Sequence record: OP752703.1
Length of the DNA stretch: 64,000 nucleotides
Direction: 5' to 3' (one strand)
Shown: positions 32,810 through 49,674 of the stretch, in pieces
Numbering within the stretch: the stretch's first letter is position 1
Layout of the letters: every line of letters begins with the position of its first letter
Position numbers and translations under genes: made by a program
Notes under the pieces: generated by a model
The model's input: the letters and a program-made list of their open reading frames with translations, nothing else
Databases searched by the model: none
What the model was told of the DNA's origin: nothing

Positions 32810-32907
32810 ATATTATCAAATGCGTGCTTACCATCACACTCGGGTAGCTATCATGGAGCTACTGCCATTTCCCTTGGTTCTGACCCAAGTCTTCATTTGA
32901 TAGTTGT

Positions 32908-32957
32908 TGGAGCCGATAGGGCGGAAGAAGCCTCTTCCGGGCTTTCCCTTAATCGGC
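32908..32957 (-). ncRNA. 50-nt CCA-ended minihelix-like RNA
   Basis: GCCGAT/ATCGGC + U + CCA; internal AGGG/CCCT and CGGAAG/CTTCCG stems. Confidence 0.5.
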
Positions 32958-32965
32958 ATAGAATC

Positions 32966-33041
32966 TGGTGGATCGTGTAGGGTTCGAACCTACGACAATC
33001 GCCTTGTAAGGGCGGCGCTCTACCAACTGAGCTAACGATCC
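32966..33041 (-). tRNA. tRNA-Val(TAC)
   Basis: Loop CT-TAC-AA, CCA. Confidence 0.95.
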
Positions 33042-33053
33042 ATTTTGTGTATG

Positions 33054-33437
33054 TTACCAGCGATTATGCATTTCGTCAACAGTCGGTAGCTCGGTCCAGT
33101 CGGTCGCCCCATCATAGATCGGGGAAATCAGGTCACGAATTACTACCAAGTTTTCTTCGGTGAAATCACCACTACTATAGTTGTCTTCCGTCTTAAGGGA
33201 ACCCATGTACTTGGTTTGCTGGATGATGACGTTTTTAATCTCTAGGTCTAGAGGCTGTTCTGGCTTCAAGCGACTATCCTTAGCATTAATGATAATGGTT
33301 AGATTATCCGCAGGCTTCCATACGTACTTTACCGTATACCACGACCTATCGGTGTAATAGGAATTAGTGGTTTTGGTTCGAGTCAGTTCCGATGGAATCG
33401 ACCCGATAATCTCTAGAAAACGCTGTGAAAGGTGCAT
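33054..33437 (-). CDS. hypothetical protein
   Basis: 127 aa between tRNAs. Confidence 0.65.
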   Translation of the reverse strand: MHLSQRFLEIIGSIPSELTRTKTTNSYYTDRSWYTVKYVWKPADNLTIIINAKDSRLKPEQPLDLEIKNVIIQQTKYMGSLKTEDNYSSGDFTEENLVVIRDLISPIYDGATDWTELPTVDEMHNRW

Positions 33438-33452
33438 ACGTCTCTTCTAAAT

Positions 33453-33528
33453 TGGTGGAGCCTATCGGGATCGAACCGATTACCTTCTGCGTGCAAGGCA
33501 GACGCTCTCCCAAGTGAGCTAAGGCCCC
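33453..33528 (-). tRNA. tRNA-Ala(TGC)
   Basis: G3:U70, loop CT-TGC-AC, CCA. Confidence 0.95.
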
Positions 33529-33536
33529 ATGTTAAA

Positions 33537-33616
33537 TGGACCGGGCGACAGGGGTCGAACCTGCATTTTCATCCATTACCTGAGTCAACGTTCGTAGCGT
33601 TGCTGGTTACACCCGG
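33537..33616 (-). tRNA. non-canonical tRNA-like RNA, D-arm absent, ACG anticodon-like loop
   Basis: 7-bp acceptor + CCA, T-arm TTCGACC, hairpin CAACG-CTACGAA-CGTTG. Confidence 0.6.
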
Positions 33617-33622
33617 AGTATA

Positions 33623-34003
33623 TTACAAAAACTTGTTAAAATCAACTACATCTCTAGGATAAATTTCACCATCTTTAGGATGGGAAGCTCTCTCTACTAG
33701 GAACTTGCGATCTTCCGTGGAGATATTCTCAACAGGAATAGTCACAGTTCGTTTCAGCAAACCGTAAAAGAACGGAGTCTTGATTAAAACGTTGCGTAGC
33801 TTGTACGGCTTATTGCTTCTATTCATGTAATTCTCTAGAAGCTCTACGACTACAACCTTCTTATTAGGAAGTCGCCATGTTGTGGTAACCAAGGCTTTGT
33901 GGTCGAAATAATCGCCACCTGTCCATCTTGTATCACGATCACATGTGGTAGCTTGGTATTTCAGGTAGTCTAGAAAATTTAAACCTTCATCTGATTCAGA
34001 CAT
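33623..34003 (-). CDS. hypothetical protein
   Basis: 126 aa, AAGGA RBS. Confidence 0.65.
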   Translation of the reverse strand: MSESDEGLNFLDYLKYQATTCDRDTRWTGGDYFDHKALVTTTWRLPNKKVVVVELLENYMNRSNKPYKLRNVLIKTPFFYGLLKRTVTIPVENISTEDRKFLVERASHPKDGEIYPRDVVDFNKFL

Positions 34004-34020
34004 AAATTTCCTTTGGGATT

Positions 34021-34097
34021 TGGTTGGACTAGCGGGACTTGAACCTGCGACCTCCCGGTTATCAGCCGGACGCTCTAACCAACTGAGCTATAGTCCA
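34021..34097 (-). tRNA. tRNA-Ile(GAT)
   Basis: Loop CT-GAT-AA, CCA. Confidence 0.95.
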
Positions 34098-34117
34098 TTA
34101 CTTTAATTGTTACTTAT

Positions 34118-34378
34118 TTAGGCGGGTAGAATATTCAGTGTCACCTTACGAGTAAGGATAACAACCGAGTCAGTCCCATCTTCATTGTCGCCGTAGACTT
34201 CAATGATGCCCTTGTTAAGGTCTAGGCATACATCATAGTGCTTATCGGTCGGGAAGTCAAGCCCTTCCTTGAACTGCGCCTGATAGAACATCAGGGCCAT
34301 TGTTTCCAGTTCATCCCAGCCGCCCCATGATTCAATGAATGAGGATTCGATACCTTCGGGAATGATGCGTTCAGACAT
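34118..34378 (-). CDS. hypothetical protein
   Basis: Start moved to MSERII. Confidence 0.7.
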   Translation of the reverse strand: MSERIIPEGIESSFIESWGGWDELETMALMFYQAQFKEGLDFPTDKHYDVCLDLNKGIIEVYGDNEDGTDSVVILTRKVTLNILPA

Positions 34379-34388
34379 TTTTATACCT

Positions 34389-47461: not shown

Positions 47462-47517
47462 TAATATTCTCAATTTACAAGAGTATTTAGGAGCGGGAAG
47501 TGGATACTGAACTTTCC

Positions 47518-47590
47518 AGCGGGCAACGCGACTCGAACGCGCATTTTCAGGGTCGGACACCTTGACGCTTTACCATTAAGCTATGCCCGC
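47518..47590 (-). pseudogene. tRNA-Gly-like copy with aberrant anticodon arm and no CCA
   Basis: GCGGGCA/TGCCCGC-U73; loop TG-TCC-GA lacks U33; ends GGA. Confidence 0.65.
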
Positions 47591-47604
47591 ATAGAGGAAA
47601 TATA

Positions 47605-47937
47605 TCAGTTGGTTCCTAGCTTGTCAACAATGGCAACAAGTTGCTTAGGCGTATCAGCAACAACCGTCAATCGATTGCCCTGATTGTTGAACAAGTTTAC
47701 CATACTTACTAGGTATTCGGTAGAGTGAACGTTGTCCGCTTTTAGATCGTAGGTACTGCCGCTCTTAGTCTGGACGCGGAAGACGCCATCAACACATTCG
47801 CCCTTAACTAGGGCAGTGGATAGACGCCAACCGCGACCTGATTCACTCAATAGGCGGTATTCATCATAGTCAACTGCATAAACGACTACTGCTGCATCTA
47901 TTTGGATGTTTTGGCTAGGAGCCATTTTCTGCCACAT
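47605..47937 (-). CDS. hypothetical protein
   Basis: Start moved to MWQKM; GW..ST.....G..F...T.SGS.Y.L motif. Confidence 0.65.
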   Translation of the reverse strand: MWQKMAPSQNIQIDAAVVVYAVDYDEYRLLSESGRGWRLSTALVKGECVDGVFRVQTKSGSTYDLKADNVHSTEYLVSMVNLFNNQGNRLTVVADTPKQLVAIVDKLGTN

Positions 47938-48204
47938 GAGAAATCCTCTAAGGTTATTAAAACTGGTGGGAAGGCCGGTACTGTTATTCCGGCATGTGGA
48001 GATTTCGTTTACACTTTTCGGATTCATTTGGAACACGTATCAAAACCCGTATCTTCGTGTCCCTGTAAACACCCTCCCTCTTAGTCAAGATTGTGGCGTT
48101 AATTCGCCCGCAGGGTTTACTGCGTCTCTCTCACTTAGGTATCTGCCTTTTCAGGCCCTCTTACTTGATAGCGTATCAGTCTACGCATTCTTCCCATAAA
48201 ACTT

Positions 48205-48291
48205 TGGTAGGGATGACAGGACTCGAACCTGCACGGCCATTACAGCCAAGGGATTTTGAATCCCCCGCGTCTACCATTCCACCACATCCCC
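48205..48291 (-). tRNA. tRNA-Leu(CAA)
   Basis: Class II, loop TT-CAA-AA, CCA. Confidence 0.95.
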
Positions 48292-48298
48292 AAATTAC

Positions 48299-48559
48299 TT
48301 ATGCCTTCTTTAGTTTACCATAATTGCGATGGTATTCAAGGCCCTTGTTGCACAGATCACGCAGAGCGGTTAGATTCTCTACACTATTAAGCATGTTAAT
48401 AGCGAACTCACTCGGAATGCGGCTCGGTGCATTGGCTACAAATGCCGTTTCTAGCCCACTCTTCACCTTGTAAGCGGCTTCATGCTTCTGAGCAATTGCA
48501 CGGGAGGCATGTTCCTTACCATCGGAAGTAGTGTATACAGTCTTTGCTTTAATAGTCAT
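48299..48559 (-). CDS. hypothetical protein
   Basis: YTTSDGKEH....A..HE motif; CTAAATA upstream. Confidence 0.7.
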   Translation of the reverse strand: MTIKAKTVYTTSDGKEHASRAIAQKHEAAYKVKSGLETAFVANAPSRIPSEFAINMLNSVENLTALRDLCNKGLEYHRNYGKLKKA

Positions 48560-48957
48560 TAATAGATACCTATTTAGGGTTTGTAGAAATTTGTAAAATT
48601 TGAATGCCTTGGTAAGGATATCTAGCTTTCACCACAAAAGCTAGCTGCATTATCAACAAAGGAGGATTCAATTATAGGAGAAAAATATGAAAACAACAAC
48701 CGAATGGGGTTCTCCGTATCACTACGCCCATAGGTGTTCTTCAAGGCATTCAATCTTTACAAACTTGCTTCCGGTTACTACGCACTCCGGCTTCCCGCTT
48801 TCAGCACCCTATCGCAGTTCAATTCTGCATCATATTGGTGGGGATAGGTCACGCTCTTTAGTACAACTGACGTGTGAGCTTCCGTCAGTAGCGACAATCT
48901 TATACTCAACGCTTTCGATTGTCAAGGGCTATAGCTGCAACTACAGCCCAAGAATAG

Positions 48958-49027
48958 CTGCACAGTAGAGGATTCGAACCTCCCAAGGCGTGCGCGACAC
49001 CCTGTCTCGCCATGATGTTCCTGTGCA
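48958..49027 (-). ncRNA. tRNA-like RNA with acceptor stem and T-arm only
   Basis: TGCACAG/CTGTGCA; GGAGG-TTCGAAT-CCTCT; non-canonical core. Confidence 0.5.
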
Positions 49028-49143
49028 TAAAAAGGGCTTTGAGGGTAGGTTTCTCTCCTACTAGTCTACCATCCTAGGTTATATGGTAGGTTCTGCACTT
49101 TAGAGCCTCAAACTGAGGGTAGGCATAGCCTACCTCTAAACTT

Positions 49144-49320
49144 AATATTCTGCAACCTTTATCTGATAATCGCCCCGTTGCTCCATCTGTCTCTTGGACG
49201 TTGGGGCCATGGTCGCTACTCTCTTGGGGAACATTTCTCTAAGCCGACAGAGCCAGAAACTACTATTATCCTTGATTTTACGCCAGATTACGCCATGTCG
49301 TATTAAAGTTGCAGATTATT
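49144..49320 (-). ncRNA. ~175-nt structured RNA candidate
   Basis: aatattctgcaac/gttgcagattatt closing stem; internal GCCCC/GGGGC hairpin. Confidence 0.45.
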
Positions 49321-49323
49321 AAA

Positions 49324-49485
49324 TTCATATATGGAGTAACAGTCTCCCTTTCCATCGGGGATATACTTAACGTTTGATACATCTGACAGTGTTTGTCCCG
49401 GTCAGTAGAGACTTCTAATAGGTGCGCTTTCTGACATTGGCCGCTATCATGTTACTACCCTGCCGACTGTCACTCAATATATGAA
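49324..49485 (-). ncRNA. ~160-nt structured RNA candidate
   Basis: ~21-bp interrupted closing stem; 13-nt tandem duplication at its 5' end. Confidence 0.45.
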
Positions 49486-49597
49486 CTCAATATATGAACT
49501 CAATCCGCTCAAATTGTTAAAGAACTCGGTGGGTCGCCTCTTTGCTATCACCGTGATGCACATTCTACAGCATCATTCACGTTTGTCAACATCTTTT

Positions 49598-49674
49598 TGG
49601 TCGTCGGGGAAGGTTTCGAACCTTCACTGATCCCTCTTTGTGAGGGACTGCTCTACCAGTTAAGCTACCCGCCG
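49598..49674 (-). tRNA. tRNA-like gene with 9-nt anticodon loop, identity undetermined
   Basis: Canonical D and T arms, CCA; GTCCC-TCACAAAGA-GGGAT. Confidence 0.7.

Follow-up and report, generated by a model that had tools for sequence, protein, structure and literature searches.

The last 64 kb of the record of the Stenotrophomonas jumbo phage RAS14 (OP752703.1), hereafter called the window (64,000 nucleotides, nt), form the right end of the phage genome and contain a transfer RNA (tRNA) island in which eleven odd, tRNA-shaped elements are interleaved with ordinary tRNA genes. A sequence-only reading had taken these elements, named here by their first window position, for one family of selected tRNA mimics that may act as decoys or sponges for, e.g., anticodon nucleases, synthetases, EF-Tu, or sensors of uncharged tRNA. 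The comparison with related phages reported here favors a different explanation, to which we assign a probability of roughly 0.6: the island would hold about 25 ordinary tRNAs, one odd but probably working tRNA, i.e., a tRNA-Arg(ACG) at 33537 with a transposed D loop, six clade-specific structured RNAs at 40383, 40622, 41753, 46793, 48958, and 49598, and a remainder of by-products of gene turnover. A decoy system in the form first suggested is not established.

Between positions 40000 and 50000 the window is 100% identical to the Stenotrophomonas phages CM1 and RAS14, which are jumbo phages of approximately 319 kb. The interval from 32,810 to 49,674 is the tRNA island of RAS14, and every RNA gene in it, including all eleven elements, lies on the minus strand. 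ARAGORN reports 29 tRNA genes, and Rfam 29 tRNA matches and one GOLLD RNA. A syntenic tRNA island is present in the Xanthomonas jumbo phages XacN1 (L002) and Xoo-sp13 (L003) at approximately 70–75% identity. Closer relatives were collected by protein look-ups, namely the 318-kb ENA contig L028/L031 and the contigs L030, L033, L040, and L041, with nucleotide identities to the window of 70–98%. These relatives were used to look for compensatory changes in the odd elements, and as a control the percentage of paired alignment cells was recomputed with the stem partners shifted (slid partners). For the clade-specific elements the comparison rests on three to five genomes. The gene content of the island turns over fast among the relatives.

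Eight of the eleven elements are truly tRNA-derived. A strict scan required a 7-base-pair (bp) acceptor stem with no more than one mismatch and, directly adjoining it, a fully paired 5-bp T stem capped by a TTCRA loop; it gave 28 matches on the minus strand of the window and none on the plus strand, which served as control. Of these matches, 24 are ARAGORN genes and the remaining four are 33537, 40383, 40622, and 48958; a further four odd elements (41753, 46793, 47518, and 49598) are called by ARAGORN, and all of these but 46793 by Rfam as well, and the assignment of the eight follows from these two sets. ARAGORN with relaxed thresholds or in mitochondrial mode produced calls scattered over both strands of the whole window and was set aside as non-discriminating, and a variant of the strict scan with a looser T loop again gave noise. 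At or above threshold for the Rfam tRNA family RF00005 are 41753 (65 bits), 47518 (52 bits), 49598 (44 bits), and 40383 (39 bits, with a 70-nt insert). The threshold is not reached by 40622 and 48958, which score weakly as tRNA-Sec-like (23.2 and 21.2 bits), nor by 33537, 46793, 32908, 44138, and 46687, for which Rfam gives no match. The elements of the sequence-only reading are thus all present roughly as described and on the minus strand, except that a tRNA-like character could not be confirmed for 46687, 44138, and 32908.

The idea of a single family finds no support, since no sequence is common to any two of the elements or to an element and the canonical tRNAs, and the architectures differ; they are at least seven unrelated kinds of element, and the idea of one system is likewise unsupported. 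The acceptor and anticodon stems are separated by a D hairpin in 40383, 41753, 46793, 47518, and 49598; this hairpin is absent from 33537, in which nucleotides 10–14 pair across the anticodon arm, and from 48958, and a GNRA hairpin takes its place in 40622. A 7-nt anticodon loop with U33 and a conserved anticodon is found in 33537 and 41753 and is lacking in 40383, 40622, 48958, 49598, 46793, and 47518. Recent paralogy with canonical tRNAs of the window or the relatives was rejected given low best local alignment scores, with the exception of 41753 compared with tRNA-Pro. A small mobile element was likewise rejected, as each of the lineage-specific inserts that were checked occurs only once; these were 32908, 44138, the 105-nt stretch that separates 40622 from 40383, and the inserts that interrupt anticodon loops in L028 and L033. 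The proposal that the elements are selected and not decaying can be upheld for seven, 33537, 40383, 40622, 48958, 46793, 49598, and the leader-trailer helix of 41753, because the relatives carry compensatory base-pair changes; these seven are conserved structured RNAs. It does not hold for 47518, 32908, 44138, and 46687, where compensatory changes were not seen in the relatives.

The strongest result concerns the widespread 80-nt element at 33537–33616, which is classified as a D-loop-transposed tRNA-Arg(ACG) by covariation among 16 distinct sequences and by a covariance model. A 7-bp acceptor stem is followed by U8 and A9, and nucleotides 11–14 pair with 33–38 beyond the 5-bp anticodon stem, so that the partner strand of the D stem and the D loop sit 3′ of the anticodon arm. 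The 3′ part consists of the conserved single-stranded segment GGUAAUGGAUGAAAAU, a canonical T arm, the discriminator base, and CCA, and every ACG-type member found has the identical anticodon loop, CUACGAA. Across the 16 sequences 97.3% of the cells are paired compared with 30–38% for slid partners, 15 of the 21 pairs changed on both sides, and the new pair 14:33 covaries (C:G, G:C, A:U). For most members, unconstrained minimum-energy folding of the single sequence also arrives at this structure. The transcribed strand is fixed by G:U pairs, for instance 53:69, which is G:U in 13 of the 16 sequences. The homologues in XacN1 and Xoo-sp13 are 84–93% identical and differ by compensatory changes, e.g., in the anticodon stem (CAACG/CGTTG to CGTGC/GCACG) and at the acceptor pair C1:G72, which becomes A:U.

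Over 20 distinct members of this class were found in phage tRNA arrays. The pattern of the conserved core matched 2 loci in IMG/VR and 19 metagenome loci, and among 185,579 species genomes it matched once, in a Hoeflea metagenome-assembled genome inside an array of 20 tRNAs. Searches with blastn and the covariance model added Rhizobium phage RHph_I1_18, Mesorhizobium phage Cp1R7A-A1, and Stenotrophomonas phage DLP_6 to the carriers. The model finds exactly one copy in the window (98.8 bits) and at other loci lower-scoring members of the same architecture with the anticodon UCU. Judged from the sequences collected, the rearranged architecture is specific to arginine (anticodons ACG and UCU), since these sister forms carry UCU, too. 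Existing tools and records pass over the element: 33537 receives no ARAGORN call and no match in Rfam 15 even at E ≤ 10, all seven GenBank phage records that carry such a gene have nothing annotated at the site, and among open-access papers and bioRxiv preprints we found no paper on a D-arm-less or rearranged phage tRNA.

Several features point to a function in translation. CCA is encoded in 14 of the 16 sequences, and in arrays of 20–33 tRNAs the other arginine isoacceptors are canonical while ACG occurs solely in the 33537 form. In the window the sole canonical phage tRNA-Arg has the anticodon UCU, and 415 of the 517 arginine codons of the long open reading frames (ORFs; 80%) are CGU, CGC, or CGA, the codons read by an inosine-modified ACG anticodon. 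Because the arginine anticodon loop is invariant, the CCA usually encoded, and the T loop canonical, and because the RNA fills an empty ACG slot in tRNA sets that are complete in other respects, 33537 is most likely a working tRNA that decodes CGU, CGC, and CGA; a decoy role is not the simplest reading for it. Its anticodon arm would form one long coaxial helix, while the elbow and the arginine anticodon loop would be kept. A main identity element for ArgRS in bacterial tRNA-Arg(ACG) is A20, and the UGGAU of the conserved segment presumably resembles the G18-G19-A20 part of the D loop of this tRNA, which we take as a lead only; the GGA in the transposed loop would then stand for G18-G19-A20, ArgRS would charge the RNA, and the three codons would be decoded following deamination of A34.

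Natural tRNAs with an abnormal D region have precedents. Mitochondrial tRNAs of nematodes are functional, being charged and used although they have no normal D arm (PMC7609411), and in 33537, too, no D hairpin separates the acceptor stem from the anticodon stem. In contrast to these, it is not reduced in size, its D arm is rearranged rather than lost, it keeps a canonical T loop and a GG-containing single strand 3′ of the anticodon arm, and the class occurs in phages of bacteria and for arginine only. Small RNAs without an assigned role are also familiar from phage tRNA regions, as the T4 RNAs RNAC and RNAD are small, stable non-tRNA RNAs that are co-transcribed with the phage tRNA genes and have no known role (PMC3014915; PMC9697503). 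The comparison with T4 is one of description and does not imply homology: both cases involve small non-tRNA RNAs among phage tRNA genes, whereas the elements studied here are clade-specific and of several unrelated architectures. Unexplained small RNAs of the T4 region and D-arm-lacking mitochondrial tRNAs are already known; for a phage tRNA with a rearranged D arm we found no Rfam family.

Three of the six clade-specific elements have rebuilt middle parts. The element at 40383–40516 has an acceptor stem, a canonical D arm, and a T arm, and in place of the anticodon loop it carries a conserved, structured domain of approximately 68–70 nt; it has no CCA. Its assignment rests on the Rfam tRNA match and on covariation: pair 27:43 covaries, and a pair of an inner hairpin is C:G, U:A, and G:C across three genomes. 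Its identity of 91% in L031 and 84% in L030 is above the approximately 76% of the neighboring ORFs. An intron-containing tRNA was considered and rejected, as the insert flanks do not yield a 7-nt anticodon loop when the sequence is read. The element at 40622–40696, found by the strict scan and followed through three genomes, combines a 7-bp acceptor stem and a canonical T arm with a GNRA-tetraloop hairpin in place of the D arm and, at the position of the anticodon arm, a 5-bp stem with a conserved hexaloop UUAGCG; again CCA is absent. Among these genomes an acceptor pair changes from A:U to G:C, two pairs of the T stem change in a compensatory manner, and the inner stem CUCAG/CUGAG becomes CCUAC/GUAGG with the hexaloop unchanged. 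The element at 48958–49027 consists of the acceptor stem, the T arm, and an 8-bp hairpin with the loop CGCGC, and has neither a D arm nor CCA. It was likewise found by the strict scan and shares 80–82% identity with its counterparts in L028 and L030, from which its hairpin and T stem differ by compensatory changes; it also has a homologue in XacN1 (L002 16989–17052) directly upstream of the permuted transfer-messenger RNA (tmRNA) of that phage.

Retention of the acceptor stem and the T arm with a replaced anticodon arm, the layout of 40383 and 48958, is shared with the tRNA-like domain of tmRNA and with YrlA. The likeness to tmRNA ends there, as no tag reading frame exists here and the XacN1 homologue of 48958 lies outside the tmRNA of that phage. 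Rfam and ARAGORN find no tmRNA in the window. A hidden tmRNA at 48540–49700, the site of the tmRNA in relatives, was searched for specifically, and none was detected at E ≤ 10 in this 1.2-kb stretch. The sole match of the YrlA family (RF02553) in the window, 28.8 bits against a threshold of 69, falls on two ordinary tRNA-Lys genes, and 41753 has no YrlA match despite its long terminal helix. In XacN1 (L002 17178–17597) and Xoo-sp13 (L003 17031–17374) the tmRNA is circularly permuted and lies between the boxA leader and GOLLD, with tmRNA_permuted scores of 123 and 66 bits. At that site no tmRNA could be detected in RAS14 or its close relatives, and RAS14 has 48958 and its neighbors there. Between the boxA leader and 48958, approximately 340 nt of non-coding sequence (49137–49480, minus strand) are 78–82% conserved in L028, L030, and L040 and match no Rfam family; at the end of this stretch L028 has an additional CCA-ended, tRNA-like gene of 126 nt (11441–11566) that is absent from RAS14.

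The other three elements are cloverleaves. At 46793–46867 lies a CCA-ended cloverleaf, called tRNA-Stop by ARAGORN, with a non-consensus T loop (AGCAUAA) and an odd D loop (AGUUAUUA), both of which are conserved. Four distinct copies of this type are available, among them a tandem second copy in L028; all of their 64 cells are paired (100%, compared with 25–44% for slid partners) and six pairs covary. Two of the four copies (that of L030 and the second one of L028) carry a different anticodon arm, so that the anticodon UUA called by ARAGORN is unconserved. An ochre suppressor was rejected because of this replacement and because TAA is the main stop codon of the long ORFs of the window (47 of 69). 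An amber-suppressor tRNA with the anticodon CUA is present at 50693–50768 (minus strand, 67.7 bits), and all relatives have kept it; stop codons in the long ORFs of the window are very rarely TAG (2 of 69).

The CCA-ended cloverleaf at 49598–49674, identified by Rfam and the comparison of five genomes, keeps its acceptor, D, and T arms and the CCA in all five, with 92.3% of cells paired compared with 35–59% for slid partners. Its “anticodon” arm is variable, and the loop differs in each genome (CACAAAG, CGUAAC, CAUACC, UGUAAAG, and GAUAAAA). A TTGACA-16-TAGAAT promoter at 49711–49684 ends 10 nt upstream of the element. This promoter belongs to a control region on the minus strand (49470–49711) that resembles that of a ribosomal RNA (rRNA) operon: two strong promoters, 49711–49684 and 49589–49562, are 122 nt apart, and after the pair come a hairpin and a boxA-like sequence, GUUCUUUAACAAUUUGAGCGG. 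XacN1, Xoo-sp13, and the closer relatives have the same arrangement, which suggests Nus-factor antitermination of the RNA-gene transcript. The boxA-leader pattern retrieved three unrelated contigs from IMG/VR, all of which are without tRNAs.

The element at 41753 (41743–41835, gene 41752–41826) is a second copy of tRNA-Pro(UGG) with a stable fold (z = −4.2). It has no encoded CCA, and a 9-bp helix of leader and trailer prolongs the acceptor stem to a stem of 16 bp in all. The extension changes in a compensatory way from GACCUGAGU/ACUCAGGUC in RAS14 to GACCAGAGU/ACUCUGGUC in L028, and in L030 it has an unrelated sequence that is nevertheless paired; the UGG anticodon is kept.

The four remaining elements comprise three products of turnover and one element that is not a tRNA mimic. 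Comparison with L028 and L030 identifies 47518–47590 as a degenerating second tRNA-Gly(UCC), in which G33 replaces U33, an A·C mismatch interrupts the anticodon stem, and the CCA is missing. In L028 the orthologue is canonical, with U33, a perfect stem, and CCA, while the L030 orthologue also has G33 and a stem mismatch, so that the gene is degenerate in two of three lineages. A promoter lies directly upstream of 47518, and the neighboring tRNA-Gly at 46876 is 92% conserved. Only in RAS14 an HNH homing endonuclease gene (46952–47461, minus strand) separates the two tRNA-Gly genes, which are 11 nt apart in L028. The element at 44138–44192 is a remnant, restricted to RAS14, of a duplicated tRNA-Met: its ends repeat those of the adjacent tRNA-Met (44212–44285; 5′ CGCGAG, 3′ CUCGCAACCAAU), it is absent from L028 and L030, the two relatives that cover the site, and its fold is no better than that of shuffled sequences (z = −1.25). 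At 32908–32958 a hairpin (fold z = −2.5) lies in a 55-nt insertion directly following the CCA of tRNA-Val; the insertion is found only in RAS14 and is absent from L031 and L033, where the flanks align at 90–97%. These three elements are unconserved or carry changes that break pairs or core positions, and neither is the case for the seven structured RNAs.

Between tRNA-Val and tRNA-His lies a conserved structured RNA (32809–32905, minus strand) that overlaps a 41-amino-acid ORF for a hypothetical protein. Its consensus fold is a four-way junction with three hairpins, it is approximately 90% identical in relatives, and the stem of one hairpin, GUAGCU/AGCUAC in RAS14, reads GUGGCU/AGCCAC in L031 and L033.

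The element at 46687–46760 starts with a boxA-like sequence, CGTTCTTTAAT, has a single hairpin behind it, and is located upstream of the promoter of GOLLD. It has no stable fold (z = +0.95) and is conserved in L028 and L040 with no informative changes. Its boxA-like sequence, also read as CGUUCUUUAAU and lying near 46750, is the second one after that of the control region. The GOLLD RNA itself (minus strand, Rfam match 45528–45953, 217.8 bits) has a homologue in XacN1 that includes the 5′ part, and its block, 92–98% conserved in relatives, starts at 46468 with a perfect TTGACA-16-TATAAT promoter at 46457–46430, which implies a transcript of approximately 0.9 kb (45528–46457). GOLLD is known from phage tRNA islands, where tRNAs or pseudo-tRNAs are sometimes found inside or adjoining it and an HNH gene nearby (PMC6582537; bioRxiv 10.1101/2024.12.08.627333). 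In the window 46793 and 46687 are upstream of GOLLD and outside its likely transcript, and they are unlikely to be parts of it, as the consensus promoter opens the conserved block downstream of both.

The view that all elements are decaying tRNA pseudogenes, generated by duplication, homing-endonuclease traffic, and deletions and with acceptor stems that are merely inherited, describes 47518 and 44138 and probably 32908 well, and it fits both the RAS14-specific HNH gene between the tRNA-Gly copies and the fast change of gene content. As a general account it is very improbable and, as judged from the compensatory changes, already refuted for seven of the eleven elements, which keep their stems through two-sided changes and are conserved as well as or better than neighboring ORFs; 33537, moreover, is kept across unrelated phage groups and many metagenomes.

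The six clade-specific RNAs call for another explanation. The region contains 64 promoter-like sites compared with 32 expected, nearly all on the minus strand, and the island would be densely transcribed from many strong sigma-70-type promoters on this strand. Selection holds the acceptor stem and T arm of the six, the half of a tRNA that is read by RNase P, the CCA-adding enzyme, and EF-Tu. In 40383, 40622, 46793, 48958, and 49598 another structure has taken the place of the anticodon arm, or this arm is expanded or varies freely, so that these five cannot decode; 41753 keeps its proline anticodon but is locked in a long leader-trailer helix without CCA. The six RNAs would be excised by the tRNA-processing enzymes via their acceptor and T-arm halves and would persist as discrete small RNAs in the manner of T4 RNAC and RNAD. 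Rapid turnover would leave behind the decaying tRNA-Gly 47518, the tRNA-Met remnant 44138, and the insertion 32908, next to the non-tRNA leader element 46687.

It is conceivable, if improbable, that the elements act only in cis, as processing punctuation: their acceptor and T-arm halves would recruit RNase P and the 3′ enzymes, and the excised pieces would have no further role. Acceptor stem and T arm are the minimal substrate of RNase P, and tRNAs act as cleavage signals in mitochondrial transcripts. In agreement with this, these two parts are conserved in all elements and the rest is free to change, several elements sit at boundaries (40622 approximately 8 nt after tRNA-Thr, 46793 8 nt after tRNA-Gly, and 49598 beginning 18 nt past a 298-amino-acid ORF), and the rrn-like antitermination leader argues for long transcripts. 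However, promoters lie immediately upstream of 49598 and 47518, leaving nothing upstream to cut off, and parts irrelevant to RNase P are conserved or covary, such as the 68-nt domain of 40383, the UUAGCG loop and stem of 40622, the hairpin of 48958 with its CGCGC loop, and the unusual D and T loops of 46793. In addition, with ordinary tRNAs packed this densely, there seems to be no need for further cleavage signals. We prefer a trans-acting mode, because 49598 has its own promoter and because parts irrelevant to cleavage are conserved: for the non-decoding elements, action through a protein that recognizes the tRNA body is the most likely general mode, and this includes the decoy idea.

As a specific claim about the whole set, the decoy or sponge system, in which abundant tRNA-shaped RNAs would soak up anticodon nucleases, acceptor-end toxins, or sensors of uncharged tRNA and so protect the real tRNAs of the phage and its translation, is unlikely, though somewhat less so than pure punctuation. 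Seven elements are under selection for a tRNA-like fold, and 49598, with its strong promoter, conserved body and CCA, and ever-different loop, can work solely through its body. Also present in the window are genes for a tRNA(His) guanylyltransferase resembling Thg1 and for an RnlA RNA ligase of the T4 type (plus strand, 17308–18066 and 22082–23224 in the RAS14 annotation), which lie beside rII-like genes and next to the tRNA island; both enzyme types are associated with tRNA repair, and their presence suggests that tRNA damage matters to the phage. Defenses that cleave tRNAs and phage tRNAs that counter them are documented: T5 tRNA-Lys rescues infection from PARIS, and tRNA-Tyr from retron-Eco7 and Septu (PMC10264068; PMC11555353; PMC10802454; PMC13096335). 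There, as here, members of a tRNA array are valued for differing from the host tRNA, and the rearranged tRNA-Arg could escape a nuclease in the same way. Yet these documented counter-measures are functional, canonical cloverleaves with point differences, not non-decoding mimics, and their protection was shown experimentally, whereas here the architecture is changed and no defense system is linked. Decoys for anticodon nucleases should keep the target loop, which is replaced or hypervariable in 40383, 40622, 46793, 48958, and 49598. The elements are mutually unrelated, several have no CCA, and there is no sign of a coordinated system; no defense or anti-defense gene was identified adjoining them, and their neighbors are mostly unnamed small ORFs. 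A bolder combination, in which the 33537 class remains active in translation but escapes a host factor that attacks or sequesters normal tRNA-Arg, and the abundantly transcribed, non-decoding top-half mimics of the RAS14 clade titrate enzymes acting on the tRNA body or CCA, both as one counter-defense layer, is rather doubtful.

Several points weigh against the explanation that we favor. A canonical tRNA-Arg(ACG) lies next to or near the variant in two phages (L005 and DLP_6), which weakens the argument from the empty slot and leaves room for a non-decoding role of 33537. L033 lacks a homologue of 33537 and 48958 is deleted in L040, so that both are dispensable. Because the search pattern contained the conserved 16-mer of 33537, the invariance of this segment is partly due to ascertainment; among the members found by blastn or the model it does vary (GGAGGAAGAU, GGAUGGAAGAU, and a 13-nt insert in DLP_6), as it does in the UCU forms. 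The covariation of 49598 is modest, with three covarying pairs that are all in the T stem, and two of its five copies have a G3·A70 mismatch. Finally, swaps of whole arms by recombination between tRNA genes could keep the pairing without local selection.

Odd tRNA look-alikes are not restricted to RAS14. XacN1 has further long tRNA-like genes at L002 10283–10387, 16857–16977, 17068–17214, and 25298–25441, and Xoo-sp13 at L003 15537–15627, 16350–16469, 16671–16819, and 25564–25661. They measure 90–150 nt, with long inserted stretches in the anticodon or variable region and, in many cases, a terminal CCA; some have a homologue in the other of the two phages, with acceptor stems that differ by compensatory changes. 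Such look-alikes thus appear to be general in this phage group. In the closer relatives, a tRNA-Lys(UUU) (L028 5989–6095) is interrupted by a 31-nt hairpin insert and a tRNA-Met(CAU) (L033 1344–1481) by a 62-nt insert. Both inserts lie exactly between anticodon nucleotides 34 and 35, the flanking halves match uninterrupted RAS14 genes, and the interrupted tRNA-Met has compensatory changes in the T stem; the two genes may contain small spliced introns or may be newly forming look-alikes.

For the biology of these phages the findings have several consequences. Standard tRNA finders and Rfam miss genes of the 33537 type entirely, and the arginine tRNA repertoires reported for phages are therefore incomplete, together with the arguments on codon compensation and on “missing” isoacceptors that build on them. 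A D arm that is rewired while the elbow and the anticodon are kept would represent a natural experiment on the needs of ArgRS, TadA, EF-Tu, and the ribosome. The non-decoding, tRNA-shaped RNAs under selection are concrete candidates for the long-unexplained small RNAs of phage tRNA regions, and they bear on the question of phage tRNA mimicry against the recently found defense systems that target tRNAs.

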